DNA from: Hyaloraphidium curvatum SAG 235-1
Lineage: Eukaryota > Fungi > Monoblepharomycota
NCBI GenBank assembly: GCA_025558095.1
Contig: JAIVFI010000028.1
Location: 434,001 to 498,000, forward strand
Length of the DNA: 64,000 nucleotides
Direction of reading: 5' to 3'
Positions 11,641-45,155 of this stretch are shown piece by piece; position 1 is the stretch's first letter; each line of letters starts with the position of its first letter. The notes beneath the pieces were generated by a model. It had not been told where the DNA came from, ran no database searches, and saw nothing but the letters and a program-made list of their open reading frames with translations. The position numbers and the translations under genes are program-made.

Positions 11641-12595
11641 ATGATTCTCTTCGGCAGCTCTTCCCGCACCGACTCCTCCAACCCGGCCGATGCTAGCGCC
11701 ACCAACCTGCACCCCGCCGCGGCCGCCGTCGACCTGTCCAAGGTCAGCCGCCTCGTGCTCAAGGAGAAGCCGGACTGGACCGAGGCCCGCATCGACGCGG
11801 CCGTGGCCGAGTACCGCCGGTTCGCCACGCTCGCGGCCGCGGGCGTGCCGATGCCGCCCTGCCTCGACGTGGACGAGATCTGGTGCGTCGCCTTGCATCG
11901 ATCTGCCCCGACATTGTCATAACTCCTCCGTTGACAGGCACGCCCACATCCTCCACACGATCGACTACGCCGCCTTCTCCGCGGCCCTCCTCGGCCCCGG
12001 ATCCTTCCTCCACCACATCCCTGCCGACCCCGAGGACACCCCCGCGGAGCAGCGCGAGGCTATGAAGGGCGGCTACGCCGCCGGCCTCGCCGCGTACAGG
12101 GAGCGGTTCGGCGCCGAGCCGCACGCGATCTGGGGCGCCGAGATGCCCGAGGAGGCCGACGCGAACTGCGCTCCGTGCCTGTACAAGGCCGAGGAGAGCG
12201 TCGTGCCAGCGCAGGATAGCCAGGCGGCCTTTTGCTTCCCGCCGCCCTGCTTCTCCAAGGCATCGCTCGCAGAGCCCGCCGAGCGCGGCGGGGCTCTCTG
12301 CCTTCCCATCAGGGCCGCCCCCGGCGGGGCCCTCTGCATCCCCAGGGATGCCGCGCGCGAGGCCTTCTGCATGCCAAAAAACGCTCCCCGCGACGCCTTC
12401 TGCATCCCCAAGACCGCCCCCCGCGACGCCTTCTGCATCCCTAAGGCCGCCTCGCGCGACGCCTTCTGCATCCCGAAGGCCGCCTCGCGCGAGGCCTTCT
12501 GCATGCCGAAAACCGCCCCCCGCGATGCCTTCTGCATCCCAAAGGCCGCTTCCGGCCAGGCCTTCTGCATGAGCATCCACCCGGCACAGGCCTGA
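11641..12595 (+). CDS. GRDP/DUF1399-like His-motif domain fused to Cys-repeat tail, copy 1 (exons 11641-11882, 11938-12595)
   Basis: A phase-2 intron (11883-11937) lies in the Trp codon. Splicing gives VDEIWHAHILHTIDY..FLHHIP, and the tail has 11-aa AFC(I/M)PK repeats. TATA box at ~11552. Confidence 0.9.
12314..12577 (+). repeat. 8 x 33-nt coding tandem repeat (11-aa units such as TAPRDAFCIPK)
   Basis: Units: AAPGGALCIPR, DAAREAFCMPK, NAPRDAFCIPK, TAPRDAFCIPK, AASRDAFCIPK, AASREAFCMPK, TAPRDAFCIPK, AASGQAFCMSI. Confidence 0.95.
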
Positions 12596-12778
12596 TGCGC
12601 GCACTCGTTCTGCATTGCAGGCGCGCAGAGGGCGTGAGCCGGCGTCGCGCGCGGGGGGGGGGGATGAGGGGGAGGGAATCCGGGCAAAAGCTCGTGTATG
12701 TAGTGCGATTCCATTTCGATATCCAGTTGATCCAAAATCATTCTGTTTTCCGTACGCTGATCGGCGGACCGCGTGCCG

Positions 12779-13960
12779 TCAACGGTAGATCGGCGCGTAA
12801 AAGGTCCGCATCGAGTCCAAGTCGCCAAACACGGTGCAGATGAACCGCAGCACGTCATTCTCCAGCGAGAAAACCCCCTGGAACACGAAGATGGGGTTCT
12901 CCAGGACGATCGATGCCGCGGCGGCGGTCTCCCCCCGCGACTCGACCGCCTCTGCCAGGCTCCCGAACGTGCCGGCCGATCCCGCCAGCCCCCGCGGCAG
13001 CAGCGAGGATACGAACGCCAGCGACTGCGCGTCGGGCGGCGTGTCGAGCCTGGTCTGCAGCAGGGACAGCAGCGCGCCGGCGAAGCCGCGCCTCCCGACG
13101 GCCACGTCCGTGACCGCGGCCTCCCACCGCGAGAAAGGGCCGTGGATCCTCCGCAGCAGCCTCTCCAGCCCCTCGTCCTCCCACGTTTTCACGGCGATGC
13201 GGATGTGGTGCCGCGCATGCCGGAAGGCGGGGCTGTTGCGCGGCCGCGCGTCCACGTCGACGGAGAAGCCCGCCATCCCCGCCAGCCGCACCGCAAACAG
13301 GCACGCGGGGTCAAAGTCGTACGGGCTGAGCCGGTCCTCGGGCAGGTTGATCCGGACGTACTCCGCCGCCGGGTCCGGGTGCGCGGCGCCCGCGGGGTGG
13401 ACCGCCCGCACGAGGCCCGCGTCGAGGGCGGCCAGCAGCCGCGGCGTGTCCGAGAGGTAGACCTCGCACGGGCCACCTTCACCGCGCAGGGGGTGCCCGC
13501 GCATGTCCATGCCGTCGTCGTCGCGCTGTCCCCGCACGGAAAGGACGCGCTCGATGGGCGGCGTCTCGTCCGACGGCTCCTCCAGCGACTCGGCCAGCGC
13601 GTCCAGCCCGTAGAACAACGCATCGTCCCTCAGCATCGCCCTCTCCGGCGCTCCCGGCGGCGGCAGCGGCTCCCTCCCGGGCACGGAGTACCCCCTCAGC
13701 AGCGGGTCGACGTACTTCCGGAACAGCTCGGGGTCGCGGTCCAGGAGGAACGACGACGGAGGGGTGCGGCCGGCGTTCAGCGGGTGCGAGGGGGAGAAGT
13801 GCGGGGCGAAGATGCTGTCCGGGAAGGAGGCGAGGGTCCCGCGGAGGTAGGCGAACGAGGGGCCCTGCACGAAGCGGATCGAGACGGTGTCGGGTTCCCG
13901 CGACGGGGAGGGGGCGCGGGGCGCGGGCGCCGGGAGGCCGCCATCGGCGTCGATTTCCAT
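12779..13960 (-). CDS. BTB/POZ (KCTD-type) domain protein
   Basis: RGTLASFPDSIF...FLLDRDPELFRKYV..LLRG...DDALFYGLDAL. Confidence 0.8.
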   Translation of the reverse strand: MEIDADGGLPAPAPRAPSPSREPDTVSIRFVQGPSFAYLRGTLASFPDSIFAPHFSPSHPLNAGRTPPSSFLLDRDPELFRKYVDPLLRGYSVPGREPLPPPGAPERAMLRDDALFYGLDALAESLEEPSDETPPIERVLSVRGQRDDDGMDMRGHPLRGEGGPCEVYLSDTPRLLAALDAGLVRAVHPAGAAHPDPAAEYVRINLPEDRLSPYDFDPACLFAVRLAGMAGFSVDVDARPRNSPAFRHARHHIRIAVKTWEDEGLERLLRRIHGPFSRWEAAVTDVAVGRRGFAGALLSLLQTRLDTPPDAQSLAFVSSLLPRGLAGSAGTFGSLAEAVESRGETAAAASIVLENPIFVFQGVFSLENDVLRFICTVFGDLDSMRTFYAPIYR

Positions 13961-14622
13961 GGTCGGGGCGCGGAACCCCGATGGCGTTGAGGTTTGGGTC
14001 GGCGGATCCTCGACGCCGTCCCGGTGGCGAAGGCCGCGCCCAACGGCACCGTCCGCCGTCGCACATCCGGGGGAAGATGATCAAGGCTGGCCGGGATGAA
14101 CAAAGTGCAGGAAACATGACAGCGCATGAAAGCCCATGTATCAAGAACAGCGTTCTCGTCTCTGGTGGACGGGCATCGGACTGGAAGGAGGCTGCCTGTT
14201 CCCTTCCGGCTACGGGCGAACCGAAACCCTCCAGAGAGGCGAAATCGAGTCAGTAGCTAAAGAGCCAAAGAGCTGCCGATCCATCTATTGTTGGTTGCGC
14301 GGTGGACCGCGGAGGACGGGAATCGCCTTGGCCACCGGGCAGGCGAGTCACCGGTGCCGGGCGGCCATCCATCCAAGGCTTCGCCCGCATCCCGGTCCCT
14401 CCGCCGAGCATTCCTCCGAAGTTATTCCCCGACCCATGAACACCGCTTTCCAGCCGTGCGGACCCACATCCGCAGGTAGGCTTCCCCCGATGGCCGTGTG
14501 CAGCTGGATCCTGGGCGCGGGCTGGTGAAGACAGATAGTGTCGGGGGTTGCCGGTGCCGCGTGACCGCTGCTCCCGGCACATGCGGCCCGAGCTGGCGGC
14601 GCCGCGCTCGGGGTCCGCCGCG

Positions 14623-16501
14623 ATGGACGTGCTCGCGCCGCCCGCCGCGGCGCTCGTGTCGCACCTTGCCGCGGCGCTGCCCGGCGTGTACTCCGCGCCG
14701 ACGGCCGACTCGGAGGCGACGGTCGGCGGCGCGCCCGACGCGGCGGCGCTGCTGCGCGAGTGCCTGCAGTCGCACTCGTTCTTCGCGCGCGTGGCCGCGC
14801 TGGCCGACCGCGTGCCGCTGCCGGACCTCGCGCTGCCCGCACGCCACCACACGATCGACGACCTGTTTGCGCCGCAGCCCGGCGGGCCGGCGGACCCGGC
14901 GGTGATCGACGCGGCGCTGGCGCAGCGGCTGGCGAACCTCAGCTGGCGCGCAATGGTGCTGGCCCGGGATGCGCTGCCCAGCCCAAAGGACGACCCGCTG
15001 GCGGACCACATGCTGGAGCTCGACGCCCCCTTCCTGCATCCGGAGCTGGCCCTGCTGCAGGGCTACCGGCCAGACCTCAACCCGATCCTGTCGGACGACG
15101 AGGGCCGCGAGGAGGACGAGGACGAGGGCAGCGACACCCCGACCGCCAGCAGGCCGGGCAGCTTCCAGCTCGCCAGCCCGCCCTCCTTCGGCGGGGGCGA
15201 GTTCTTCCCCACCATCGACCAGCTGGCCCTGCACGACCTGCTCTTTCCCGGCGGGCTGCCCGCCGCGGTGCCGATGCGCATGGCGGCGTCGCTGCCCGCG
15301 CACGGGTTCGCCCCGCAGGCGTTCGAGGCCGGCGCGGGCTTCCCCCTCCAAGGACTGCACTTCCCCGACTTTCAGCTCGCCAGCATCCACGAGCAGCCGC
15401 CACCTCTGGCCCCGGCGGACGACATGTTCGCCAAGAAGCCCACGCGGAGGGTCTCCCCGCCCCGGCCGGCGGACGACTCCCCCCGCCCCGCATCCCCGCG
15501 CAAACCCGCGCGCCGGTCCTCCGCCCGCGCCGATCCCGTGCCCCCGCAGCGGCCCGCATCCGCGCTGTCGAGGGCCGCCAAGGCGCAGGCACAGGCGCAG
15601 CCCAAGCAGGGCAAGTACAACACCATACCCGCCGTGGCCATCGCGCTGTGCAGCAACTGCGGCACCGAGAACTCGAGCCTGTGGCGGCGGAACCCCGCGG
15701 ATGGGGAGCCGCTGTGCAACGGTAATGCGCGTTCTGCGGAATGCGCGGTTCGCATGCTGACATCCCTGCGTCCGCTTTTCAGCCTGCGGCCTCTTCCTCA
15801 AGCTCCACGGCACCATGCGGCCCGTCTCCATGAAGACCGACGTCATCAAGAAGCGCAAGCGCGGCGGCGCAGCCTCCTCCCCCTCCTCGTCCAGCTCCCG
15901 CCGCCGCGCACCCAGCAGCCACGGCAAGCACACCCCACCCCCGGAACCCCCCGAGAGCCCCTCCCGGCGGAACCGCCCCCCGCGCCCGCGGCGCCGGCCC
16001 TCTGCCGACCCGTCCCCGCCCCCGATCGCGATGCACCACCCCGCCCCTCGCCGCCCGGACATCTTCTCCTCCTCCTCGGCCCCCACGCTGTCCCACCTCG
16101 CCATGCGGCTCTCGGCCGACGACCTCGCGCGGCACACCTCGGCCTCCCCGCTGCCTTCGTCCCCCGCATCCCCGTGGCCGCCGTTCGCACCCTCCCCCCT
16201 CTCGTCGTCCTTCTCCGGGAACGACGAGTTCCCGGGGGGCATCGACATCCCCCGCGCCTTGTCCGCCAAACGCGCACGCACCCCCGACGACGACGAGGAC
16301 CTCGAACTCCTCGCGGACGTCGACGGCACCGCGCCCACGCACGCCGACCCCCCCTCCCTCTCCGCGACCCCGGACTTCCGCGTGCCGCAGATGGACCCCG
16401 ACGCGCTGTACCGCCACCTGGGGAAGCTGATCGAGGCCGGGCGGAGGGAGGCGGAGGCGCGCGGCGGGGCGGGGGAGGCGGAGGAGGCGTGGGAGGAGTG
16501 A
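14623..16501 (+). CDS. AreA/Gat1-like GATA transcription factor (intron 15722-15782; alternative ATG at 14581)
   Basis: Spliced finger [51 protein letters not shown]. The N-terminal [10 protein letters not shown] resembles the DUF1752 motif of AreA. Confidence 0.9.
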
Positions 16502-17035
16502 CGGATCCACAAATGTAGGGGTTGGAGCTGCCGGTTGGGCATTGGATTACCCGGATTTGCGGATGTACAGGATAGAGAAGAGACTAGACGATTGGTTCTG
16601 CTGTGCGCGATGCATCGTTCGGCTGGTTTGGACGGTCTTGTGCATCCGACTTCGTTGACTCACCGAGACCATTTGAGGAGTTCGAGGTTCCTCGTCGTCG
16701 GACTGACGGTGCGCCGGACCGTCGCCAGAGATTTGATGCCCGACCACAGGCTTCCGCGACGGTGAGAAGTCGAGGACCCGCTCGGCGGTCGATTGGCCGT
16801 GATCAAAAGTGGCGTGGCGTCGATTGATCTCGATCGGGGGTCTGGTCGGCCCGGCGGCGGGCGGGTCAAAGACTGTCCCTATCGACCCTCGATCCAAGTC
16901 ACCCCAGGCTCCCGTGACTGCCGTCCGGGACCGTCGAACACCGCAGCGGGCGACGCAGACGCCCGCTTGCTCCCCTCCCGAGCCTTCCCCGACCGAACCC
17001 ACCGAGCGGAGGGCGAACCCGGACGCTCCCGAACG

Positions 17036-18283
17036 ATGGCCAACACCACATCCAGCGCCGTCGTCGGCGCCATGGCCGGCATGCCGGCGCACCTCCTCGG
17101 GGACTCGCTGTGGGCCCGCATCGGCCGCGGCTTCCTGAACTTCACCAAGCCGGTGTTCGAGAAGCTCGGCGGGGTCGGCACCCACACCGCCTTCACCTTT
17201 GCCGTCTTCTGGACGAGCTACATCGCCATGTACAACTTCTACACCGCCGTGGACAAGCACAACCTCTGGGGCCTGCAGAAGTACAAGATCCACCCGGGCA
17301 AGATGGAGCCCCAGGAGCTCAACGACAAGGTCGTCGACGGGATGAAGAGCGGCTTCTGGAAGGGGGTGGGTACCTATCGGCCGCTGATCCGGGGTACCGG
17401 CTGACGGGAAATCGCCAGGCCGTGCGCATGGCGGCCGCCTACGGCGTTTTCTTCAGCTTCGGCCGCCAGCCCGTCTTCTCGTTCCCCAAGTCGCCCCTCT
17501 CGCTGCTCGGCAACCTCGTCATCGGCTACTTCATCTTCGACTTCGGCTTTTACTGGTGCGTTTTGCCCGACCTCGGTGGTGGCCGTGGTCTGACGGCGCC
17601 CGCCTCGTCTTAGGCTTCACCGCATGGAACACCTGCCCTACTTCTACAAGACCTGGCACAAGCAGCACCGTGGGTTCATCCGCGGCCCCCTTCCGCCTTG
17701 TTCTGACCGCGACGGCAGACGAGTTCAAGCTGACCAACCGCGGCGCCACCTCCTGGAACGACATGCGCGAGTCCTTCGGCATCATGGTCCTCAACGACCT
17801 CACGGCCATGGTCCTCAAGTTCGACCTGTTCACCTGGCTCTGCTGGACCGTGCTGGCCAACTACCTCGACTTCCACATCCACTGCGGTGCGTGGGCGCCC
17901 GGTCTGCGGGGCTTGTGTGGTGCTGATGGATCGTGTCATTCAGGCTACAAGTTCCCGTGGAACCCCTTCAACCTGATTGAGGACCCTCTCGTTCACGATT
18001 TCCACGTAAGTTCCTGTGCGCGGCATGCAGATCGAGTGGTCTGACGGGTCTTCCCCCCTCCGATCCCCTTTCCCACTCCGCCGCATCCGCCCACCAGCAC
18101 TACCGCAACGTCGGAAACTACGCCCTCACGCACTGGGACATGCTCTTCGGGACCAACAAGCCCTACCTGGAGTGGCAGAAGCGGCAAGCCGAGCGCAAGG
18201 CAAAGGGCCTCGAGGAGGAGGCCGAGCGGCGGGACGACCCGGACGAGGCCGAGGACGAGGCGGTGGCGGCCAAGGCGGAGTGA
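17036..18283 (+). CDS. Fatty acid hydroxylase / sterol desaturase family protein (multi-intron)
   Basis: His boxes HRMEH, WHKQHH, HIH..GY and HDFHH after splicing, plus LQKYKI and WDMLFGT. Confidence 0.88.
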
Positions 18284-18755
18284 TGGAGGCGGTGTTGGGG
18301 CGGGCTCGCTGGACGTTCAAGGTTGACGTTCCCGGGTGTATGCGATGAGCGAAGATCATTTGCTATTGAATCTGCCGAGGTGGCGCGGATCAGGTCCAGA
18401 TGGCGCAGGGCAGCAGCAGCATCCGCTTGCCGACGAATGCACGAGCGACTCGATACAAGCACCGTCGTTCTAGAGGTGCTGACAGCCTTTAGTTAGGGAC
18501 CGCGGTGACTCGGAGGTGCCTGAGGGATGCCTGAAAGCCAAACCAAGGGCGCGTGACGCAGTCACCACAAACGTTCCAGAATTCTCGAGCCCCGCAGCCC
18601 AACAGGGCCGGCACACCGGACAAACGGTGTCCGCTTTCTTTACATTGAAGCCCGCCGAGCTCTCGGGCGGCGCCCGAGGTCTCCGACGTGCGCGGGGCAC
18701 CGCCGGCGTTGGTCCAAACATCCCGCGTCAACACCGACTGAAGCAAACTCCGGGG

Positions 18756-20034: not shown

Positions 20035-20191
20035 TCGTGCCTTGATGGTCCGCTGTACATACTGTGAATATCTGCTTGGGATCTAGCGGTAGAGGCCCTC
20101 TTGCGGGGATACCAGGGACATAGATATCTTGCTCGCTCTAGTCGCTGCAGCCCATCGCCGTACAACCGTGACGCCTGTCCGCCGATCGAAT

Positions 20192-21689: not shown

Positions 21690-21808
21690 GTCGCCGCGGC
21701 CGACGCGTCTGCCAAGCCGGGCGATAGAACTCTTTCCGCACATCACGGGGACAACTCGGCAAAAGGCTCATTCTCTCGCCGCGAGATCCATTAGACCCGC
21801 ACGCCAGT

Positions 21809-23002: not shown

Positions 23003-23927
23003 TCAGGCCTGCACCGCGGGCGCCATGAAGCACAGGGCCTGGTTGCCCCGCGCCGCGGGCGCCGCGAGGCCGTAGCCGCAGAAGGCCTGCCGGGGGGCGC
23101 CCGAAATGCCGAAGCCGCAGAAAGCCTGCTTCGAGTCCGCGGGCTTGGGCTCCCCGCGGCCGGCGGCCCTGATGGGGCTGCAGAGGGCCACGCCGGTCGC
23201 GGCAGCCTGGTTGCTGAACGCAAAACAGGGCACGCATCCGGCCTTTTCGGCCTTGTAGAGACAGAGCGCCTTGCCGGAGTCCGCGGCCTTCGGTTGGAGG
23301 CAGAGCGCCATGCCCGCCTGCTCGGGCTTGGAAACCGAGAAGATGCAGATCGGCGCCCGGCCAGACGGCTCGGAGGGCCCGTCATTGTCCTCGGCCTTGT
23401 AAAGGCAGGGAGCGCACTCGGCGTCGGCCTCCTCGGGCAACTCTCCGCCCCACATGGCATGCGGCTCAGCGCCGAAGCGCTCCCGGTAGGCCGCGAGGCC
23501 GGCGGAGTAGCCATTCTTCATGGCCTCGCGCTGCTCTGCGGGGGTGTCCTCAGGGTCGGCCGGGATGTGGTGGAGGAAGGAGCCGGGCCCGAGGAGGGCG
23601 GCCGAGAAGGCGGCGTAGTCGATCGTGTGCAGGATGTGGGCGTGCCTGTCAAGAAGGAGGTTAGCGGGCAATCGGAGCAGGTCGATGCGAAGAAGCTAAC
23701 CAGATCTCGTCCACGTCGAGGCAGGGCGGCATCGGCACGCCCGCGGCCGCCAGCGTCGCGAACCGGCGGTACTCTGCCACCGCCGCGTCGACCCGCTCTT
23801 CGGTCCACTGCTTCTCCTTGAGCACGCGGCGCCGGACCTTGGACAGGTCGACGGCGGCGGCGGCGGGGTGCAGGCCCGAGGCGGCGAAGGGCGAGGGCTC
23901 GGAGGTGGTGAGGTTGAAGCAGAACAT
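23003..23927 (-). CDS. GRDP-like domain + Cys-motif tail, copy 2 (intron 23646-23700)
   Basis: MFCFNLTT..VDEIW|HAHILHTIDY. Tail motifs: PICIF, ALCLQ, ALCLY, GCVPCF, ALCSP, AFCGFG, AFCGYG, ALCFM. Confidence 0.9.
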
Positions 23928-28105: not shown

Positions 28106-29611
28106 ATGTCGCCACGGGAAGTTGCCCCGGAGGCAACGGCTCTGTCGCCGGAGGAATGGCTGGTCCTGTTCCCCGCCGGGATGTCTCCCTCCCCCTCGCG
28201 CCCGGTTGCGGAGCCGCCGCCCGACCCTGCTGCCGCCCGGCGCGCCGAGGATCCGCTCACGCTGGCAGCCGCCCGTGAAGCTTTTGCCTCCGCCGGCTTG
28301 CGGTGGACAGCCCGCCTGGTGCGCTTCCACGAGCGGCTGCCGTGGGTGAGGAGCTTCACCTGGTTCTTCTACCTCGTGGCCTTGGGAATCGCACCTGCCC
28401 TGGCCTGGACCGGGCTGCACGCGACAGAGAGTCCTTATGCGAGCCAGGCCACCGTTGCCGGACTTGCCGTTGCGCTGCTGGTGGCTTGGGAGAGCATGGT
28501 CTGCTTGTGTTGGGACTACTTGGCGAAGAACGGCCTGAGAAGGCCGAAACCTTTCCGTCCGTATGACAAGCTGGCTCTAGCGAGTGCGGTGAGGTGGCTG
28601 CAGCTTCGCAGCGACGTTAGCGGCAAGGCCGGGGAGTCGTCGGAAACGCCGGTTTCTGTGCTGCTGCTGCACGACGACGCCGACGCCATGTGTTCGTGCC
28701 CGCGTGGGCAGTGCGGGGGTGGACAGCTGAGGCGGGATGCCTACATCCGTTTCTTTGACTTCTGGGCCGATGTGCTCCGCACCGCCGTGGTCACTCTTCT
28801 TTTGCTTTGGACTCCCATGGTCTCCCTTGCGGGCAAAGGTTTCTGGCACTCCTGGGGCGTGACTGGTGCCATTTTTGCTCTTATCTGGACGACCCTCTTT
28901 TATCCTCTGATGGTTTCCGTGCGCGAGTACACCGTCCACACAGAAGCCAGCGCCAACATCGTGCGGAGGAATCTCCACAGGGCGCTCTCCGCATCCTTGC
29001 GCTCCTTCTTGCGGCGCTACAGGGAGTTTCTCTCGAAGTATTTGGGGGAGAATCCCGCAACAGCATCCTCGGTCGAACTGCACGCGCGCATCCTCGCCCT
29101 GCTCGAGTATGCATGGGCCTCCCAGCTGGGTTACCTGCCCCTCTACCGCCGACTCTTGGTCACATGCATCATCGCCAACCTGGTCGCCTTTATCGTGAAC
29201 CTGGCGGTCGGCCCGTGTATCACGGCATTCCAGATCGCGGACGTCGCCGGCATCATCTTCGTGGTCGCGCGGGAGCTCCTCATCACCGCGGCATATAACT
29301 CCCAGGTCGAGGATGTAGCGTCGCTGTGCGCCTCTGCCGCCGCCGCCGCCCGCAGCCTCCTCACCGAGCACGCCGGCGGCTCCCCCGACCCGCAGGCATT
29401 CGCCGCGCTCCGGGCGCACGAGCATCTCCTCGCCGGCGCCGCGGCGTCGGCGCTGGAGCGCCGCGTCAGGTTCCTAGGGCAGCCGATCGGGTTCGGGACC
29501 GCGAGGGGGCTGGCCATTACGGGGATCACGATCATATTCGCGGCGGTGGGAGCGATGAGGGGGTTCGGGGTGCGCGTGGTGCTCGGGACCGTCTGCACGC
29601 CGGGTCAGTAG
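28106..29611 (+). CDS. Multi-pass membrane protein, possible 7TMIC/gustatory-receptor-like (DUF3537-like); paralog A
   Basis: About 7 hydrophobic segments, a Cys loop HDDADAMCSCPRGQC, and C-terminal RFLGQPIGFGTARGLAITGITIIF. Paralog at 33342. Confidence 0.75.
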   Translation: MSPREVAPEATALSPEEWLVLFPAGMSPSPSRPVAEPPPDPAAARRAEDPLTLAAAREAFASAGLRWTARLVRFHERLPWVRSFTWFFYLVALGIAPALAWTGLHATESPYASQATVAGLAVALLVAWESMVCLCWDYLAKNGLRRPKPFRPYDKLALASAVRWLQLRSDVSGKAGESSETPVSVLLLHDDADAMCSCPRGQCGGGQLRRDAYIRFFDFWADVLRTAVVTLLLLWTPMVSLAGKGFWHSWGVTGAIFALIWTTLFYPLMVSVREYTVHTEASANIVRRNLHRALSASLRSFLRRYREFLSKYLGENPATASSVELHARILALLEYAWASQLGYLPLYRRLLVTCIIANLVAFIVNLAVGPCITAFQIADVAGIIFVVARELLITAAYNSQVEDVASLCASAAAAARSLLTEHAGGSPDPQAFAALRAHEHLLAGAAASALERRVRFLGQPIGFGTARGLAITGITIIFAAVGAMRGFGVRVVLGTVCTPGQ

Positions 29612-29992: not shown

Positions 29993-30702
29993 ATGATGGC
30001 CACCATTTCCGCCGACTTCACCATCTCCGGCCTCCACCCCGCCGCGGCCGCCGTCGACCTCGCCAAGGTCCGCCGCCGCGTTCTCAAAGAGAAGCCGGAT
30101 TGGACCGAAGCCCGTGCCGACACCGCCGTCACCGAGTACCGCCGGTTCGCGACACTCGCGGCCGCGGGCGTGCCGATGCCGCCCTGCCGCGACGTGGACG
30201 AGATCTGGTGCGTTGCATCGCAGCACTTGGCATTCGATCGCTCCTCACCTCGAAGTGTGACAGGCACGCCCACATCCTCCACACGATCGACTACGCCGCC
30301 TTCTCGGCCGCCCTCCTCGGCCCCGGCTCCTTCCTGCACCACGTCCCGGCCGACCCGGAGGACACCCGTGCGGAGCAGCGCGAGGCCATGAAGAGCGGCT
30401 ACGCCGCCGGGCTCGCGGCGTACAAAGAGCGGTTCGGCAGCGAGCCGCACGCCATGTGGGGCGGGGAGCTGCCCGAGGAGGCCGACGCCGAGTGCGCGCC
30501 GTGCCTTTACAAGGCCGACGATTGCAAGGCCGATGATGAGGGTGCCACGGATGATAACCGCTGGCGATGCCTGGTCTGCGTCGCCAAACCCGCCAACCGG
30601 TCAGAGCCGGCTTTCTGTGGCTACAGGGCCCTGGATGCCGTCCCCACGGGGAAGCAGGGCGGTGCGGGAAAGGCGGCCGTTGCCAGGGTTCAGCAGGCCT
30701 GA
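29993..30702 (+). CDS. GRDP-like domain + short Cys tail, copy 3 (intron 30208-30263)
   Basis: Same domain and intron position as the other copies. Tail CAPC..DDC..WRCLVC..AFCGY. TATAAA at ~29905. Confidence 0.9.
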
Positions 30703-33134: not shown

Positions 33135-33341
33135 AGGCATCGTGGACCGATCCCGTTCTTTGAGCCATGTACGGCGATTTGCATGCTGGTGCTATGCAGT
33201 CTGGAGAGGGCTCGATCTGCGGCACGGCACCACGGACGACCCGGTTTAGGATGACCAGCCTTGGGGCTCGGACGCCCCGCGATCGCAGTGCAGTGTTTGC
33301 GCGTGTCCCCCACGACCACTCACCGAATATCTCGAGCCAAG

Positions 33342-34925
33342 ATGCCGCCGTCGAACGAAGACGACGCAGAAAAGGCGACCTTTGCGCCGGAGGGCGCCAC
33401 AGGGGCAGCGGACTTCCCCATTTCCGCCGCCGAGTACCTCGCGGCCGTCCCGCATTTTCCCGCGCTGCCGCCGTCGCTGAGGGGCGCCGCGCCGCCCGCC
33501 GACCGCGCCGCGGAACTGCGCGACGCGCGCCCGCTGGACAGCCGCGCGCTCCTCGACGGCCTGTCCGCCGCGCCGGCGCTGCGCTGGATCACCGTCGCGC
33601 AGCTCCGCGTGGCCCCGTTCGCCGCCCTCGCGCGCGAGCGCACCGTGGCATTCATCGCCACCGGGATCGTGGTCAACTCTCTCCCGTGGGCATTCGGGAG
33701 GGACCGCTTCGGCACCAAGCAGCTGGCGGTGGGCTACGCGACGTGGATCGCGCTCTGGCTGTGCCTGGGGATCGTGAACCCGCTGACGGCCGGGTTCCGG
33801 CGGGGCCTGGGGCTGAAGGGGCAATCGTCGGCCTCGAGGCCGAGCCTGGACGCCTCGCCGCTGGCGGGGTTGGTGCGTTGGAATCAACTCGTTGCCGACG
33901 GCGGCACCTCCCGACTCCTCCGGCACGACCCCGACGACAAGCTTTGCCCGTGCGCGCTCCCCGGTTGTTCCGGAGGCCTGTTGCGCGAGATAACGATCCT
34001 CCGGCTGCTGGAGTTTGCGTTCAAACTGACAACCGTACTGACGGTCTTCTTGTGCGGTTTCTGGACGCCCACCGTGACCCTGGCATCCGTCGTTTGGACT
34101 TCGCCGTGGGCCGCCACACTCGCTGCTCTCAATAGTGAGTTTCCCTACCCCTCGCGCTAGTCAGCCGCCTAACGATCCGGGAAGCATTTGTCCTGCTAGC
34201 GTACTCGTTTCCAAACGCCCTCTGCCGGTTCACAGGCAACGTCGGCATCTTCCGCCTCTCCGAGCGCGTATCTCACCGCGCGATGAAGCTGGCCCTCGAG
34301 GACCTGCTCCACCGGCTCTCGTCCGGCGCCGCGAATCCCTCAACCCCGATCTCGGACGAGCCCCACGCGCAGCTCCACGCGGTGTTCACCGCCGCGTGGC
34401 GCACCAGGGTCTCTGCTTTCCACACCTCCGGTAGCGTGCTGTTTGCGGCTGCAATCTGCGTGGTCATGGCCGGGATCAACATGGTGCGCGGCTTCCGCTC
34501 CCTCATCGGATCCTAACTGACACGTCCCTGTTTTCCAGATAAGTGGCTCCTGCGTGCCCTCGTTCTACATCGCCTACCTCCTCTACGTCCTCCTCTCCCT
34601 CTCCCTCTTCGACCTCCTCTCCCTCGCCGCCTCCAACGCCCAGGTGACCTCCCTCGTGGACCTGTACCTCGACGCGCGCCGCGAGATCCGCGAGCTCCCC
34701 CTCCCCGCCTCCCCCGCCCTCGCCGCGGACCTGCGGCGGCACGACGCCGCGCTGTCTTCGTACGCGGACGCGGCGCGGAGCAGGGGGCGGTTCCTCGGGT
34801 TCGCGGTGGACTACGGGGTGGTGAGGACGGTGTATGCCACGGCGCTGACGCTGGCGGTGGGGATTTGGAGCGTGCTGAGGGGGTTGGGGGTGGTGGCGAC
34901 GATGGACATCGCGTGCGGGGGGTGA
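33342..34925 (+). CDS. Multi-pass membrane protein, possible 7TMIC/DUF3537-like; paralog B (2 introns)
   Basis: HDPDDKLCPCALPGCSGG, FWTP, LAASNAQVTSL and RFLGFAVDYGVVRTVYATALTLAVGIWSVLRGLGV. Colinear with paralog A. Confidence 0.75.
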
Positions 34926-35285: not shown

Positions 35286-36193
35286 ATGTTCTGCTTCAAC
35301 CTCACCACCTCCGAGCCCTCGCCCTTCGCCGCCTCGGGCCTGCACCCTGCCGCCGCCGCCGTCGACCTGTCCAAGGTCCGGCGCCGCGTGCTCAAGGAGA
35401 AGCAGTGGACCGAAGAGCGGGTCGACGCGGCGGTGGCCGAGTACCGCCGTTTTGCGACGCTGGCGGCCGCGGGCGTGCCGATGCCGCCCTGCCTCGACGT
35501 GGACGAGATCTGGTGAGCTTCTTCTCATTTTCCTGCTCCTACTTCCTGCTAACCTCTCGCGGTGACAGGCACGCCCACATCCTGCACACGATCGACTACG
35601 CCGCCTTCTCGGCCGCCCTCCTCGGCCCCGGCTCCTTCCTCCACCACATCCCGGCCGACCCTGAGGACACCCCCGTGGAACAGCGCGAGGCGATGAAGAG
35701 CGGCTACTCTGCTGGTCTCACGGCCTACCGGGAGCGCTTCGGCGCCGAGCCGCACGCCATGTGGGGCGGAGAGTTGCCTGCGGAGGCGGACGCCGAGTGC
35801 GCGCCATGCCTTTACAAGGCCGAGGACAATGATGAGCCAGCCGAGCCGTCTAGCCCGGCGCCGATCTGCATCTTCTCGGTTTCCAAGCCCGAGCAGGCGG
35901 GCCAGGCGCTCTGCATCCAGCCCAAGGCCGCGGACTCCGGCAAGGCGTTCCGTCTCTACAAGGCCGAAAAGGCCGGATGCGTGCCCTGTTTCGCGTTCCG
36001 CGAGGAGGCCAAGACGGCGGACTCGAATCAGGCCTTCTGCGGCTTCGGCATTGCCGGCGCCCCCCGGCAGGCCTTCTGCGGGTACGGCATCGCCGGCGCC
36101 CCCCGGCAGGCTTTCTGCGGCTACGGCCTGGCGGCGCCCGCGGCGCGGAGCAACCAGGCCCTGTGCTTCATGGCGCGCGAGGTGCAGGCGTGA
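35286..36193 (+). CDS. GRDP-like domain + Cys-motif tail, copy 4 (intron 35513-35568)
   Basis: Same domain. Tail PICIF, ALCIQ, AFRLY, GCVPCF, AFCGFG, AFCGYG x2, ALCFM. Confidence 0.9.
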
Positions 36194-36455
36194 TCTTGCC
36201 GCGGATGATGTACGATTCCATCGATATCCATCGATGTTTTGCATACTGTGTCATTCTTGATTTCTCCGCCGCCGGACGTCCGAGGGATGGAGCTGGATGT
36301 AGAGGCAAGCAACCGTCGGAAAAGGGTGAAAGGGGCACGTCGATACCAACACGAGACGATCACCAATCAGCTTTAGCCCAGCGCATCTCCACATGAGACC
36401 CGCATCATTTGCTGCTCTTTCCGGCCCCCAAGCTGCTTCGGGCCTTGGCGGCTAG

Positions 36456-37303: not shown

Positions 37304-37339
<36 letters not shown>

Positions 37340-38253
37340 TCTCCTGCGCAGGGAAGACGACGTCGCCTCGATCTGCGTGGCCGATTTCGGCGAGGCCTTC
37401 GTCGGCGAAGCCCTCATCGGACCGGGCGATCCGCTCGCTGCGGGCTCGAGCGCCTCCCTCGCGGACTCGCAGATGAAAACCATGGCCGGCACCCCCTTCG
37501 TGGGCATCCCACGTCTCCCTCTGCTTTGCGCCGCTGACCTCCCGCCCGCAGTACCTCGCCCCCGAGATCGCACACGGCAACAGCTACACCTCCAAGGTGG
37601 ACCTCTGGTCCCTCGGCTGCATCGCGTACGAGCTCCTCGCCGGGCGCTCCCCCTTCTCGGACTCGCGCTCCATGGCGGAGCTCTTCTCCCGCATCGAATC
37701 CGCGCGGTACTCCCCGCCCGCGGGTGCCTCCCCCGCCGCGCTGGCTTTCCTCGCGCGGCTGCTGGACCCCGACCCCGCGCGCCGGCCCGACGCCGGGGAA
37801 GCCCTGGGCGACCCGTGGATCCGCGGCGGCATGTCCAAGCTCAAGAGGATGCAGAGCGGGTTGGAGGTGTTTTTCCGCAAGGGCACGGGGGAGGTGATGC
37901 CGGTGCACCACGCCGCGGGGGGGTGGGAACCGGGCGAGGACGGGGACGAGGAGGAACCGGGGGAAGCGGAGCGGGTGGAGATCACGGAGGTGCTCCTCCC
38001 CGGTGCCGAGCGGCTGGGGAGGCGGAATTCGGGGACCAGGGTGACGATCCGCGCCGGCGGGGTGGTGCCCGTCCTCGACGGGACGGCGGTGGGGACCGGC
38101 GGAAGGGCGCGGTGGACGCGGGGGAGGAAGCAGGTCCGGTTCGGGGACTCGGGGGTCGACGTGGAGGCGGCGGAGATGGGGTTCGCGGAGCTGAAGCTGG
38201 AGGCGGCGTGGGTGGCGGAGGACGACGAGGAGGGGGAGGAGGGGCGGAGTTGA
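36456..38253 (+). CDS. CAMK-group Ser/Thr kinase (intron ~37500-37550)
   Basis: IGVGSEGTVK, VAIK, HRDLKPANVL, ADFG, AGTPF|YLAPE and DLWSLG. Confidence 0.9.
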
Positions 38254-38483
38254 AAGGATGCGGGCGTTTGGACTCTGGCACGCAATCGTTGGATCTGATT
38301 CGCAGCTGTGGCATGGCATGGTGGGGCGGTCGTTGTTCGTTGTTCGTCGTTCTTGGGCGTTATTACATCTACATCGGCCTGCAGGCCAGGACCATGGGGC
38401 AGAGGATCCAGGTCCGAAAGATCGGGCATTGTAGGTATCACAGATGTATTGGATCGAGTGGATATCGTCGGAATCTCGCAGCA

Positions 38484-39364
38484 TCACACGGAAACCTGGG
38501 GAGCCTGCCAGCAGAAGGCCTGCTTCGAGTTCGCGGGCTTCTGGGAGACTGTATGGAAGCACAGGGCCTGCGCAGGGGCGTTGATGCAAAGGGCTGCTCC
38601 GCGAGCCTCGCGGGAAGAGGCATTGAAGCACAAGGCCTGCGCGGGCGCGTTGATGCAGAGGGCTCCCCCGCGGGAGGTAGCCATGGCGTCGCTGCCGGCG
38701 GCCTTGTTGTAGATGCAGAGGGCCGCAGGGGCGGTCGTCCAGTTGACGCAGCGCGCCATGCCCGCGTCCTTGCCGGCCGCGTTGATGCAGAGAGCCCTTC
38801 CGGACGGCTCGGCGGGCGCTGCACCGTCCTCGGCCTTGTAGAGGCAGGGAGCACACTCGGCGTCCGCCTCCGCGGGCAACTCTCCGCCCCACATGGCGTG
38901 CGGCTCGGCGCCGAACCGCTCCCGGTAGGCCGTGAGGCCGGCGGAGTAGCCGTTCTTCATGGCCTCGCGCTGCTCTGCGGGGGTGTCCTCGGGGTCGGCG
39001 GGAACGTGGTGAAGGAAGGAACCGGGCCCGAGGAGGGCGGCGGAGAAGGTGGAGTAGTCGATCGTGTGCAGGATGTGGGCGTGCCTGTCACCGCGAGAGG
39101 TTAGCAGGCATAAGGAGCAGGTCAGTGAGAAGAAGCTCACCAGATCTCGTCCACGTCGAGGCACGGCGGCATCGGAACTCCCGCGGCCGCTAGCGTGGCG
39201 AACCGGCGGTACTCGGCCACGGCCGCGTCGACGCGCTCTTCGGTCCAGTGCTTCTCCTTGAGCACGCGGCGCCGGACCTTGGCGAGGTCAACGGCGGCGG
39301 CGGCGGGGTGCAGGCCGGAGGCGGACATGTCGGCGGAGTCGTAGGCGTAGGCGAAGCAGAGCAT
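38484..39364 (-). CDS. GRDP-like domain + Cys-motif tail, copy 5 (intron 39085-39140)
   Basis: MLCFAY..VDEIW|HAHILHT. Tail ALCIN, ARCVN, ALCIY, ALCIN, ALCFN, ALCIN, ALCFH, AFCWQ. Confidence 0.9.
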
Positions 39365-39957
39365 GGTCGTTCGGGGATGGTTTATCGGGTCGGTTGGGTG
39401 TTTGGTTGCTGTCGGGTTCGATGGGGAGGCCGGCGGGGTGACCGGTCATATATAGTCTCGCTGCTGAGCGCTCCGCCATGCGGACTTTCGGCGGGGGGGC
39501 GCGGGGTTCCGGGGGACGTTCGAGGACGAGTGGCGCAGCGGGCGGAGCGCCGGTGCCCCCCTTCCTCGAAGTCGACCGCTGCAGCCCCTCCCTCTTCCAT
39601 TGCATCGTTTGGCCAAAATCTAGTGATTCATTAACCTCAATCCCTTATTTGTCGAGCTCAGCTCAGCTCCGCCGTTTGGGGTGTGAAGGAGAGTGTCCGG
39701 GCTCCCGAAAGGAGCTGGCGCAGAGAACCAAGTTTTCCATCCCTCTCTATGACGCATTGCCATTGCAGTTGCGCGGGACGTCCGTTGCGCTACCACTGCA
39801 TTCACTTTCCCTTGGAGGCAGGCCTCAGAACCCCATCGGATGAATCAGTTGTGTGGCAAATCATGAGCGTCCCTGGGCTCCGCCACCGTCGGAGTCATCC
39901 ACAGCTCACACAGCTGCGATCCTGCGAATCGTGCCCCAAAGCACACACACCACACCA

Positions 39958-40629
39958 ATGAACCCGTACCGCTACCCTGAACCCGGCCCGGCGGCAGCGC
40001 CGGCGCCTTCGGCCGCAGCGTGGCCCGCCGCCGCGCCGGCAATCCCGACCCCTGACTACGCGGAGCCTTCCCCGCCGCCTGGCTCCTCCCCACGCATGAC
40101 CTACTACTATGGCCAGCCCGGGTCCGACCTGGGTTATCCGGACGCATCGGGCTATACGTACGGCCCGCCTGCCTACCCGGCGCAGCCGGCGCTCCCGCCC
40201 CCGGCTTACCCCGCACATCCGGCCGACTACTACCCCCCGCAGTCGACGACCGTCGTCGTCTCCGACGGAACAGACGACGAGAGCGTGGCCGCTTCCAAGA
40301 CCCCGCCGACCAAGCGCAGCGGCTGGACATACCTTGGCATCGGTCTGCTCCTTACGATTGCCGGCGCCGCCCTGCTGGCCCTGTACGCGACCCAGCGTTG
40401 CGGATACCAGCGTTTCACATATACCTGCTATGTAGGGCTCCCTTGCCGGGCGAACGGAACCGCTACTTCGGACGTGCTGACCCGCGTTCTGCAGGAAATG
40501 GTGTCGTACCTCTACAGTGGCATCGTGTGCGTCATCTTCGCCGCCATCTTCATCGCGTGGGGTTCGTCGATCTTCTACCGCCTTTCCAAGACCGCGTCAA
40601 TCGCCCCGCAAGCGCACCAGACGAAGTAA
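39958..40629 (+). CDS. Pro/Tyr-rich N-terminus, two-TM membrane protein (one probable intron)
   Basis: PPAYPAQP-type repeats followed by two hydrophobic helices with Cys between them. Confidence 0.65.
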   Translation: MNPYRYPEPGPAAAPAPSAAAWPAAAPAIPTPDYAEPSPPPGSSPRMTYYYGQPGSDLGYPDASGYTYGPPAYPAQPALPPPAYPAHPADYYPPQSTTVVVSDGTDDESVAASKTPPTKRSGWTYLGIGLLLTIAGAALLALYATQRCGYQRFTYTCYVGLPCRANGTATSDVLTRVLQEMVSYLYSGIVCVIFAAIFIAWGSSIFYRLSKTASIAPQAHQTK

Positions 40630-40735
40630 CGGAGGGATGACGGGCGATCCAGTCAAAAGCCGGCGTGCCCCATCCGAGAGGTGAGGCCCCGAGAAGTGTT
40701 GACCGCCAATTCCATGCCATGTTTCGTGAGCGTTT

Positions 40736-41062
40736 TTGGCTTCTATGCCTCGCATCCGAGCTTGTTGGTACCGTGGAGTGTGGAACGAAGGTTGTACTCT
40801 CCCCGGGCGTCCGAAATGGATGCATGTAGGACGAGATGTAGTGGGACTAAGATGCTCGAGGTGCAAAACGACCGAGTACTGCTCGCCCGAGTGCCAGAAG
40901 GCACACTGGTCCGTGCACCGCCATGGTTGCAGGCCTCGAGGCACCGCCTTTGGACCTGATGACTTGTTGGGCCATTCCATGGTAGAGGTCATTGATCGGG
41001 CTACTCACCGCAACAAGGTAGTGGTTTCTCATGGACTGACCAATTCTCGCAACGGTCGATGA
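40736..41062 (+). CDS. MYND-type zinc finger protein (small or partial)
   Basis: LRCSRCKTTEYCSPECQKAHWSVHRHGC. The first CxxC pair and the start are not resolved. Confidence 0.55.
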   Translation: MASMPRIRACWYRGVWNEGCTLPGRPKWMHVGRDVVGLRCSRCKTTEYCSPECQKAHWSVHRHGCRPRGTAFGPDDLLGHSMVEVIDRATHRNKVVVSHGLTNSRNGR

Positions 41063-41175
41063 AGCCACGTCGTGACGATGTGCGGTAATCGATTCCTTCA
41101 ATGCGTGTTTCTCTACAAGATGCAGCGTTGGTTGCCTGGTATCCCTCCTCCTCCCCCTCCCCAGACCGAGATCCT

Positions 41176-43944
41176 TCACTTCTTCCTCCCCCCGCGCCCG
41201 CCCTTGCCCCTGCCCCGCTGGGACCCCTTCTTCCTCGGCGACTTCTGCCCGACGGAAAAGTCGCCGTCCGACATGCCCTCGTTCCCGTCCGACATCCCCA
41301 CCTCGTCGTCGCTGTCCGCGCGGATCGCCCGCCTGGCCCTGGTCGGCGTCTCGGGGGTCCTCGGCGGCGGGCGCTGCTTCTTGGACGGCGGCGTGGTGCT
41401 CGCGGGCGTCGGCTCCTGCGGCTGGTTCTTGCGCTTGACCGGCGTCGCGGGGACCGCTTGCACCGGCGCCGTCGGAGCAATGTGCACCGCGGCCGGGGTC
41501 GGCTCCTGCAGCTGATTCTTGCGCTTGACCGGCGTCGCCGGGGCCGCTTGCACCGGCGCCACGTGCACCGCGGCCGGGGTCGGCGCGGCCACCCTCGGAA
41601 CCCTGGCCTCGGCCCCGCCAAACGCCCGCCTGAACGCCTCCGAGTTCTTCTTGTGCAGCCAGTCCAGTTTCCCGTACTTCCAGCTCAGCGGGCCGCAGTT
41701 GATGTCCACGAGCAGCAGCTCGGCCTTGGACCGGGTGAGCGCGACGTACTGCCCGAAGAGGGAACATCAGCTCGCTCGGCGCGCACCGAGAGACGGTCCG
41801 ACCCACGATCAGGTTCGCCTCCTGCTCCCTCTCCCACTGCATCGCCCCCCTCTCCCCCCGGGGGAAGAACGGGCAGTCCCACGGCTGCACGATCACCACC
41901 CTCGCGCGCTCGAGCCCCTTGGCCTTGTGCACCGTCGAGAGGTGCGCCGCCCCCGCCGCTCCGGGGGAGTGCCCGGGGGACAGGGCGGGGTAGAGGCGGT
42001 GCAGCTCCTCGAACAGCGCGTGGCCGACCGCCGGTCCGGGCCCCGTGGCAGAGGCGAGCAGGCGGTCGATGATGCGCACGAGCAGTGACCCCGGATCGAG
42101 CGGCTTGTCTGTCACCTTCGCCGCCGCGATCGCCCGGAGCTCCGCCAGCGGCACCGCACTCCCCTCGTGGTACGGATCAGGGAACCGCGGAACCGCCGCC
42201 CCGTGCTTCCTCAGGAACGCCGCGAGCCTGCTCCCGACGTTGACCGCCGAGCACGTGTGCGGGATGCCCCACTCCCCTAGCTTCCAGGCGAGCAGCTTCA
42301 GGGGCTGGTTCAGGCGCGCGAGGACCAGGTCTCCCGGCCTGAAGATGGCGGCAGCAGCCTGGCCCGCATCGGGGGAGTCGATGTCCCAGATCCCGGGTCG
42401 GTATTCGAGCGCACCGCGCGCGGCACCGGGTCGGGCGTCGAGTCGCACGGGGCGTTGGAGCAGGTTGGCCATCTGCATCGTGGCTTCGACGTGGAGGGCG
42501 GGGCAGCGCCACGTGATGGGGAGGTCGAAGCGGGTGAGGGCGCCGAAAGAGTGGGGGAGGTGGTCCAGGGAGTTGGGGAGGGAGCCGGCCCTGTGAAGCA
42601 CTCGTGTCAGCCGAGTTGGACCACACCCGGATTGAACACCACCCACCATGCGTAGATCGACTGGTGGCGGTCCCCCACGGCCACGAGCCGCCCGCCCTGG
42701 TCCAGGCACCGCCGCACGAGCTCGATCCGCATCAGGGAGAGGTCCTGTGCCTCGTCCACAAAGACGAACTTGAGCCGCGGGAACTTGACACCGCGCACGA
42801 GCACGGGGAGGTAGATCAGGTCGTCGAAGTCGACGACGTGCTTCCTGCGGGGCTCCAACGCCCAGCCCACGGCGCGGCGCATGGCCATGCCGAGCACCTG
42901 GACCACCCTGCGCTCGACGGCATCCAGGGGCAGGTGGGCGAAATCCTTGTGCTCGAACTTCTTGCCGTAGAACCGGAACAGAGAGGCAAAGTCGGTCGGC
43001 GTTTCCACCGCGGGCGGGGGGAGCGGCTGCAGCAGGTCGCGGAGGTTCCTGCTGGTGTCGACGACAAGGTGCTGCACGGGGTCGAGCGGAGGTGGGATAG
43101 CGTTGCAGCGCGCGAGGGAGACGAGGTGCCGCAATCGGAAGGCCTTGTTGAGATCCGGGATCGACGGCACGGGGGGCGGGACCTTGCGCTTCATGGCGGC
43201 CTCGACCTCCTCGCCGTGCAGCGACTTGAGGATCTTGGACATCTTGGCGCCGTCGAGCCTGATGAGGTCGCCGGCCCCGCGCGATGCCGACCTCGCTTCC
43301 GCAGACCGCTCGTCGTCGCCCTCCTCCCCGTCGTCCTGCAGGTCCGCGGTCCAGTAGTCCGGGTCGTTCTCGAGGTCGTCCAGGTCGTCGTCGTCGCAGT
43401 TGAGCGACGAGTCCCACGACTCGTCGGCATCCTCCGCGTCGGGCTGCCGCGCGAGCGCCTTGACGTGGTCGAACCAGATGCGCCGGCCGAACGCGTGGAA
43501 GGTGAAGACCCTGCCCGATGGCCGCGTTAGAAGGGGAAACGCGCGTGGGACAGCTGTCACGAGCACCTGCGGCTGGCCCCGGCACCGTCCTGGATCTTTT
43601 CTCCGAGCTCTGGGGGCGGCGGCGGAGGAAGAGGGAGGCGTCAGACAAGGCAACGCGGTCGCACAGGGCGGGCGCCCACCCTCCATGATCCTTCGGTTGA
43701 ACATGAGGCACGCGACGCCCTCGTGCGGCACGTGCTGCAGCGCGTGCAGGATGGCGGTCGTCTTGCCGCTGCCGGCGCGGGCCTCGATGAAGCCGCTCCC
43801 GCGGCCGGAGCGCAGGAAGTCGGCCAGCCGGCGGAGGTTCGCGTCGCTCTCGGTGGACCCGGCTCCCGGCACCGGGCGCGGTCGGGCGGGGGCGCCGGCG
43901 GGCCCGCCCGCGCGGGGCGTCGCCGGCGGGGAGGCCGAGGCCAT
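41176..43944 (-). CDS. UvrD/REP-like superfamily 1 DNA helicase (multi-intron) with basic low-complexity tail
   Basis: ARAGSGKTT, TFHAFG, DFDDLIY, FVDEAQDLS, AVGDRHQSIY, TWRCP, LSTVHKAKGLE and EANL|YVALTR. Confidence 0.92.
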
Positions 43945-44230
43945 CGCGATGCGCCCGCGGGAGGTAGCGGCACGTGCTGGTGGGCCGGCCGGGGCTTGTT
44001 TGTTCGACGTGTTTGGTGGAGGGGGCCGCGACCTCGGCGCGACCTCGGCGCGGCCCGCTGCTTCGGACGCCTTTCTCGCCAGATCTGCAAGCTCTGCCCC
44101 GGTTTCCCGTCTTCAGAGGACGGAGGTGTGCAGAAGAATGGACCTCTCTTTGAGCCTTGGAAGTTATAACGCACAGAATGTATTGTATCGATTTGGACAT
44201 CGATGGAATCGCACGTCATCTCGGAGCAGA

Positions 44231-45155
44231 TCATGCCTGCACCGCGGGTGCCATGAAGCACAGGGCCTGGTTGCTCCGCGCCGCGGGCGCCGCCAGGCCG
44301 TAGCCGCAGAAGGCCTGCCGGGGGGCGCCGGCAATGCCGAAGCCGCAGAAGGCCTGCTTCGAGTCCGCCGTCTTGGCCTCCTCGCGGTTGACACCCCTGA
44401 TGGGGCTGCAGAGGGCCTCGCCGGTCGCGGCAGCCTGCTTGCTGAAAGCAAAACAGGGCACGCATCCGGCTTTTTCGGCCCTGTAGAGACAGAACGCCTT
44501 GCCGGAGTCCGCGGCCTTGGGCTGGATGCAGAGCGCCTGGCCCGCCTGCTCGGGCTTGGAAACCGAGAAGATGCAGATCGGCGCCGGGCTAGACGGCTCG
44601 GCTGGCTCATCATTGTCCTCGGCCTTGTAAAGGCATGGCGCGCACTCGGCGTCCGCCTCCGCAGGCAACTCTCCGCCCCACATGGCGTGCGGCTCGGCGC
44701 CGAAGCGCTCCCGGTAGGCCGTGAGACCAGCAGAGTAGCCGCTCTTCATCGCCTCGCGCTGCTCCACGGGGGTGTCCTCAGGGTCGGCCGGGATGTGGTG
44801 GAGGAAGGAGCCGGGGCCGAGGAGGGCGGCCGAGAAGGCGGCGTAGTCGATCGTGTGCAGGATGTGGGCGTGCCTATCAAGAAGGAGGTTAGCGGGCAAT
44901 CGGAGCAGGTCGATGCGAAGAAGCTAACCAGATCTCGTCAACGTCGAGGCAGGGCGGCATCGGCACGCCCGCGGCCGCCAGCGTCGCAAAACGGCGGTAC
45001 TCGGCCACGGCCGCGTCGACCCGCTCTTCGGTCCATTGCTTCTCCTTGAGCACGCGGCGCCGGACCTTGGACAGGTCAACGGCGGCGGCGGCGGGGTGCA
45101 GGCCGGAGGCGGCGATGGGCGAGGGCTCGGAGGTGGTGAGGTTGAAGCAGAACAT
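44231..45155 (-). CDS. GRDP-like domain + Cys-motif tail, copy 6 (intron 44874-44928)
   Basis: Same domain. Tail PICIF, ALCIQ, AFCLY, GCVPCF, ALCSP, AFCGFG, AFCGYG, ALCFM. Confidence 0.9.

Follow-up and report, generated by a model that had tools for sequence, protein, structure and literature searches.

What is made by the six genes of Hyaloraphidium curvatum SAG 235-1 in which an almost constant head domain is followed by a tail of short cysteine-containing repeats? The genes lie in a 64,000-nt stretch of contig JAIVFI010000028.1 (hereafter, the window, whose numbering is used throughout), and an earlier interpretation of the DNA (the sequence-only reading) had proposed that they encode a self-modifying peptide system or, alternatively, a metal-binding one. 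The analysis reported here indicates that the system is real, transcribed (copy 1) and under selection, and that each gene probably encodes a fused precursor consisting of a PF27765 head and a disordered tail of A-hydrophobic-[Cys/Ser] core units. Judging from sequence comparisons, this is most likely a self-processing multi-core precursor, the bacterial form of which appears to be paired with a cognate CHASE receptor. Processing by the head of its own cores, with small peptide-derived molecules as products that would be signals in bacteria, is given about even odds (a probability of roughly 0.5).

All six genes were found where they had been placed originally, and in each of them a 55-56 nt intron with GT..AG borders splits, as proposed, the Trp codon of DEIWHAHILH. 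The six open frames are organized as follows.

Copy 1, 11641..12595, + strand: 299 aa, same as P0001; exons 11641-11882 and 11938-12595, intron 11883-11937; head 11707-12190; tail 12191-12595 with 10 A-[FL]-C units, mainly within 33-nt repeats.
Copy 2, 23003..23927, - strand: 289 aa; intron 23700-23646; head 23873-23393; tail 23392-23003 with 6 A-[FL]-C units and AGCVPCF.
Copy 3, 29993..30702, + strand: 217 aa, same as P0003; intron 30208-30263; head 30032-30516; short tail 30517-30702 with 1 canonical unit.
Copy 4, 35286..36193, + strand: 283 aa, same as P0005; intron 35513-35568; head 35340-35821; tail 35822-36193 with 5 units and AGCVPCF.
Copy 5, 38484..39364, - strand: 274 aa, same as P0004; intron 39140-39085; head 39313-38832; tail 38831-38484 with 7 units of the ALC[I/F]N type.
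Copy 6, 44231..45155, - strand: 289 aa, same as P0002; intron 44928-44874; head 45101-44621, identical to the head of copy 4; tail 44620-44231 with 6 units and AGCVPCF.

For five of the six window copies (P0001-P0005), the NCBI protein models of H. curvatum are identical to the spliced models, and two additional copies on contig C46 of the same genome bring the total to eight genes. Transcription and splicing of copy 1 are shown by RNA run X1, which gave spliced contigs joining 11881 to 11937 (GT..AG) and a contig end near 11595; spliced contigs were also obtained for seven introns of the gene neighbouring copy 1. The splicing evidence consists of contigs from this one run and concerns copy 1, with junction k-mers that are partly common to paralogues. 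No signal peptide was apparent in hydropathy profiles of the copies, as had been claimed, nor was any membrane segment. Copies 2, 4, 5 and 6 start with M-[F/L]-C-F, which places a core-like unit ahead of the head. Since introns and heads are mosaic among the copies, the comparison indicates gene conversion between them.

Several features of the gene surroundings were recorded along the way. A CCGCATGGCGG-like element, preceding a TATA-like box, is located ca. 90 nt upstream of most copies, and a GATTCCATCGATATCCA-like 3′ element is found just downstream of five of them. Copy 1 and a convergent BTB-like gene are present on one RNA contig (11937-13418), which suggests overlapping 3′ ends (12595-12785). 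Both copies of contig C46 (L007 and L008; C46:24693-36254) are arranged head-to-head with a short-chain-dehydrogenase-like gene, the pair being duplicated and inverted.

To which family does the head belong? It had been assigned to a GRDP/DUF1399-like family; the GRDP-like model PF07173 scores 14-17 bits against a gathering cut-off of 22.7 and aligns over its last third only. By a precomputed match on P0001-P0005 the head is PF27765 (UCP032817-like), a relative of GRDP, and this family name fits better. The assignment combines the precomputed match with Atlas matches (features 0.91-0.92, shape template modelling score 0.76-0.77) and with the invariant motif D-x-x-W-H-x-H ... H-H-x-P. NCBIfam and PDB sequence searches returned no match, and an exon-wise Pfam scan returned nothing significant; full-length searches were run with the NCBI models of the copies, while the spliced models of the window were searched per exon. 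At E<=0.001, 4,231 relatives of the head were retrieved (50% clustering).

The near invariance noticed earlier is to be corrected in that the heads of the window copies are 88-100% identical and the acidic linker that follows varies (EEADANC or AEADAEC). Purifying selection on the head is shown at the codon level (ratio of nonsynonymous to synonymous substitution rates, dN/dS, ~0.06-0.19 or lower). Among 89 diverse homologues, residues Y49, D69, W72, H73, H75, T79 and Y82 (P0003 numbering) are invariant, and H97, H98 and P100 of the HHxP motif are nearly so. From residue type and invariance, we infer a candidate metal site at the Asp/His set. The predicted model of the head is confident (predicted local distance difference test, pLDDT, 88) and mostly helical over ~140 aa; the tail is predicted to be disordered.

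Within the tails, the A-[FLMYW]-C unit holds 52 of the 90 post-head Cys residues of the eight genes, compared to a mean of 2.8 and a maximum of 10 after shuffling. The description of the tails as hypervariable and copy-specific is overstated: copies 2, 4 and 6 share one type at 77-95% identity, which leaves four tail types in six genes. Nor does every tail contain repeated motifs, as had been thought, copy 3 being the exception. A constant head with diversified tails, taken earlier as a signature of self-modification, says little by itself, since gene conversion and repeat slippage yield the same pattern. Each protein contains 6-15 post-head Cys, 9-20 residues apart, and one or two CxxC motifs; in the six copies, Cys makes up 7-9% of the tail, CC and CxC are absent, and 3-12 aromatic residues are present per tail. 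No dibasic site (KR, KK, RR or RK) was found in any of the six tails. The formylglycine motif CxPxR was also considered and rejected, being only sporadic.

Do homologues carry such tails as well? They do: the A-hydrophobic-[C/S] unit is present in bacteria, in a jakobid and in the fungus. In Massilia, Telluria, Ideonella, Janthinobacterium and related metagenomic contigs, the head is found together with 3-19 repeats of [T/A]-A-[Y/W/F]-[C/S]-small (examples are AAWCG, AAFCYV and TAYCASP). Tyr or Trp precedes Cys in 81% of the bacterial cores. Ser takes the place of Cys in 23% of them and does so in whole lineages, e.g., Janthinobacterium, where all cores have Ser; on trees, the Cys/Ser switch amounts to 4-6 changes. 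Repeated cores were also detected in the jakobid Andalucia (AALCFAR, four times), in Arcella and on other eukaryote-like contigs, and AGCVPCF is common to copies 2, 4 and 6 and three unrelated homologues. Throughout the PF27765/PF07173 family, which has the same head and no assigned biochemistry, flexible Cys-bearing tails are common (at least two Cys in 105 of 123 tails).

Some homologues show further peculiarities at their C-termini. Out of 88 bacterial multi-core proteins (L120-L212), 27 end with R-P-x-[L/I], an ending also seen in single-Cys homologues and a possible follower or recognition element. In homologue P0053, the head is fused to a ubiquitin-like domain ending with LRGC, and the fungal genome contains a ubiquitin-like frame ending with FWGC (L223:1149-1511); a terminal Gly-Cys may represent the same substrate theme.

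What genes neighbour the homologues? Next to the bacterial multi-core genes there is a gene for a CHASE-domain receptor, the two forming a module that is a candidate signalling system (L012, L016-L065 and L120-L212, from Burkholderiales genomes and metagenomes). In a first batch of 55 loci (53 bacterial, two of these from the same contig), a CHASE-containing protein cluster was present in 51. In a second batch, whose taxa are partly those of the first, a CHASE gene was adjacent in 48 of the 52 multi-core loci with at least 1.4 kb of upstream sequence; two more loci have a gene with a sensor output domain, and of the remaining two, one is a tandem's second gene and the other a contig end. The CHASE gene is located upstream in 44 cases, downstream in 6 and divergently in 5; one divergent CHASE gene stands beside P0102. 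The neighbour is a CHASE-HisKA_3-HATPase protein in Oxalobacteraceae and a CHASE-GGDEF-EAL protein in Ideonella. None of 29 homologues with short or Gly-rich tails has a CHASE neighbour within 1.5 kb. Contig L062, titled Streptosporangiaceae, clusters with Oxalobacteraceae in both trees and is probably misbinned.

In Massilia genomes, the pair of sensor and core gene is repeated two or three times. Between paralogous modules of one genome, the CHASE domains are 55-64% identical, the kinase parts 93-100% and the heads 80-98%. The aromatic residue of the core requires 12 changes on the CHASE tree (13-15 on trees made from half-length CHASE sequences), compared to 20 on the kinase tree and 21 on the head tree; for a set of 18 Massilia modules, the respective numbers are 2, 10 and 10. 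The Cys/Ser choice and the +2 residue fit the CHASE tree no better than the other trees. Detection of a peptide by a CHASE domain is known from Dictyostelium (PMC6324907).

How could the cores be processed? Since no enzyme, protease or exporter recurs among the neighbours in the bacterial loci, the head is the sole candidate catalyst. It would act, probably by means of a metal bound at the Asp/His set, on cores in its own chain or in that of a partner, a step that we consider about as probable as the reading as a whole. In a more specific version, which is doubtful taken as a whole, the head would activate the amide between the hydrophobic residue and Cys/Ser, and the thiol or hydroxyl would attack it. 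Attack of this kind, leading to an acyl shift or an azoline, is the chemistry of inteins, autoinducing peptides and YcaO enzymes. The outcome could be a thiazoline/oxazoline ring or, alternatively, an N-to-S/O acyl shift in which the chain is cleaved and a small product, cyclic or acylated, is set free with the hydrophobic residue at its end. Cleavage with a product ending in the aromatic residue is slightly favoured, speculatively, since it is the aromatic residue, rather than the sequence after it, with which the receptor varies. In Burkholderiales, the product would be the ligand of the adjacent CHASE sensor, which would give pherotype-like pairs; the fungus would have kept the producer and expanded it into a varied library of cores. 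The proposal of a self-modifying multi-core system is thus favoured in part: the unit conserved across homologues, the lack of a recognisable modifying enzyme in the bacterial loci and in the window and the co-varying bacterial CHASE receptor speak for it, but the metal site is suggested by residue invariance only.

A number of observations weigh against self-processing and signalling. A Cys conserved in 88-93% of heads is replaced by Ser in all six window copies. Fold searches of two models against the PDB gave no match (best Z 3.8 and 4.1), and no structural relative is an enzyme. Docking of the tail into the head, suggested earlier as a check, was seen in one AlphaFold model with a pLDDT of 46-59 and was not reproduced by a second model; we dropped it as evidence. 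Homologues without a tail or without Cys exist. On the side of the receptor, one sensor stands beside two core genes with different aromatic residues at L044, L164, L179 and L198; the CHASE-linked loci are mostly from Burkholderiales and hence not independent; and an appearance of co-variation could also arise from orthologous modules in which the kinase-head block has undergone gene conversion. No signal peptide, protease or exporter explains how a product would be released. A low-resolution tree puts the heads of the fungus among eukaryotic homologues and not inside the CHASE-linked clade, and a search of the fungal genome for CHASE genes found none, a negative that introns weaken; for these two reasons, the signalling role of the bacterial genes would extend to the fungus only by analogy. 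Recent transfer from CHASE-linked bacteria was considered but is not supported, as the nearest homologues (P0006-P0009) have eukaryotic genes around them or stem from a sample that also yielded contigs of this kind.

Could the head be a non-catalytic leader or docking domain, with cores modified by an enzyme encoded elsewhere (e.g., MNIO) or freed unmodified by housekeeping proteases? No enzyme fold was found for the head, other homologues have it fused to TIGR04222 proteins, which are proposed MNIO substrates (PMC12452194), and MNIO genes are present in three of the four bacterial genomes tested. The nearest of them are, however, 50-60 kb off or on other contigs, and no MNIO gene (PF05114) was found in G003 or in the fungal genome, where introns limit the negative. 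In addition, MNIO chemistry on Cys leaves Ser cores unexplained, and the invariant polar D/H/H/H/H set resembles an active site rather than a leader, so that we regard this explanation as unlikely. Similarly unlikely is a tail that serves as a low-complexity assembly or regulatory element (self-association or a redox switch) of an enzyme with some other small substrate, with the CHASE kinase merely controlling expression. The free variation of repeat number and spacing, the evolution of tails through slippage and conversion, the tailless homologues and the sensors that adjoin two different core genes would all fit such an element; it would explain neither why only the sensor diverges among paralogous modules nor why the core aromatic residue is followed more closely by CHASE than by the linked kinase and head.

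The metal-binding alternative, a metallothionein-like Cu/Zn/Cd or thiol buffer with the head as metal chaperone, came out as improbable. The 6-15 post-head Cys and the CxxC motifs of each protein are compatible with it, as are the dense Cys tails of many short homologues and the link of related TIGR04222 proteins to copper-related MNIO clusters. But the tail Cys are sparse and isolated, never forming CC or CxC, and a fixed context of Ala and a hydrophobic residue would be superfluous for chelation. The all-Ser cores of Janthinobacterium and other lineages point the same way, because a thiolate array cannot use Ser at this position and a side-chain nucleophile can. Finally, a Cu or Fe site in the head might cross-link the aromatic residue oxidatively to Cys/Ser or to a neighbour, as BURP or DUF3328 cyclases do. 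Four invariant His could hold a redox metal, the frequency of Tyr and Trp in bacterial cores would suit the reaction, and fused multi-core BURP cyclases exist (PMC12186524). The presence of Leu, Phe and Met at this position in the fungal cores and in those of some bacteria, together with the lack of CH or HxxHC motifs and of a fold match, make this quite improbable. As to DUF3328, HxxHC is absent from the six proteins and no member was recognised among the window neighbours, the search being confined to these.

How does the system compare with known peptide pathways? Like fused borosins (OphMA), it combines an enzyme-like domain and a core in one cytosolic fungal polypeptide, and by analogy, iterative action on its own or its partner's tail is plausible (PMC8429565). 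Unlike borosins, the fungal genes have no methyltransferase domain (no Pfam, NCBIfam or PDB match), the ~140-aa head has another fold, and the cores are short repeats centred on Cys/Ser. Burpitides made by fused BURP cyclases, which act autocatalytically, share the fused architecture, multiple cores and a His-rich site (PMC12186524), but the fungal copies have none of the four CH motifs of that class, no BURP match and no signal peptide, and they allow Leu/Met at the core. They also differ from dikaritins, having neither a hydrophobic N-terminus nor Kex2 dibasic sites in the tails. Some TIGR04222 proteins bear the PF27765 head N-terminally and have low-complexity Cys/Gly/Ser tails; unlike the fungal copies, these are membrane proteins with Gly-rich tails, often encoded near MNIO genes. 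In contrast to MNIO-modified peptides of the bufferin and methanobactin type, no PF05114 enzyme is encoded next to the precursor, and in contrast to YcaO azol(in)e peptides, no YcaO cyclodehydratase (PF02624) was found in the fungal genome (controls were positive; introns limit the negative) or seen among recurrent bacterial neighbours.

The autoinducing peptides of agr systems rely on Cys or Ser as nucleophile (thiolactone or lactone), owe their specificity to a hydrophobic residue and co-vary with their receptors. The bacterial modules may be likened to agr pherotypes in their hydrophobic plus Cys/Ser core and their co-varying receptor pairing. They differ in that the recurrent neighbour is CHASE-HisKA_3-HATPase or CHASE-GGDEF-EAL instead of AgrC, with no AgrB-like recurrent neighbour seen, and in that the precursor is multi-core, fused to its presumed enzyme and found in Gram-negative hosts, whereas AgrD is single-core.

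If self-processing by the head is correct, a new class of peptides that are made on ribosomes and then modified after translation (RiPPs) would reach an early-diverging fungus, and Gram-negative soil and water bacteria would have a new peptide-derived signal. The head family comprises over 4,000 relatives at 50% clustering, among them GRDP genes of plants for which phenotypes in growth and stress are known, and the multi-core members offer it a concrete candidate substrate and a one-gene assay. The bacterial two-gene module provides a candidate ligand for a CHASE receptor family, with a built-in specificity contrast of Tyr, Trp and Phe cores. A broader proposal, which we make tentatively, is that PF27765 is a new class-defining, self-acting peptide-processing enzyme of unsolved fold whose cores would become signals, read by CHASE in Burkholderiales as part of a Gram-negative signalling system with pherotypes; the libraries of Hyaloraphidium and some protists would serve receptors of their own or interfere with neighbouring bacteria. 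In the literature searched, which included few subscription papers, there was no description of the multi-core A-hydrophobic-[C/S] form or of the linkage to CHASE.

The surroundings of the six genes were also inspected for a biosynthetic gene cluster. This possibility was rejected: the neighbours, identified by eye and in some cases by Pfam, are RNase Z-like, flavin monooxygenase, BTB, GATA, desaturase-like, glyoxalase, alpha/beta hydrolase, thioesterase, kinase and UvrD genes. Two genes of another family may be considered as possible partners.

28106..29611, + strand: membrane protein in which seven hydrophobic segments are seen; immediately upstream of copy 3.
33339..34925, + strand: second member of the same family, spliced, sharing ~30% identity with the first; immediately upstream of copy 4.

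Both proteins have an H-D...C-x-C...C-x-G-G loop and no Pfam match, and the family has at least 87 matches in the genome (656 candidates). The window contains only these two members, both directly upstream of core genes. Under assumed family and gene counts, such adjacency is a 1-3% event, and, as it was spotted post hoc, we treat it as a lead only. Elsewhere in the genome, at C43:319727-325379, two inverted arrays of ubiquitin-like repeats flank another member of the seven-segment membrane family (C43:321289-322761).

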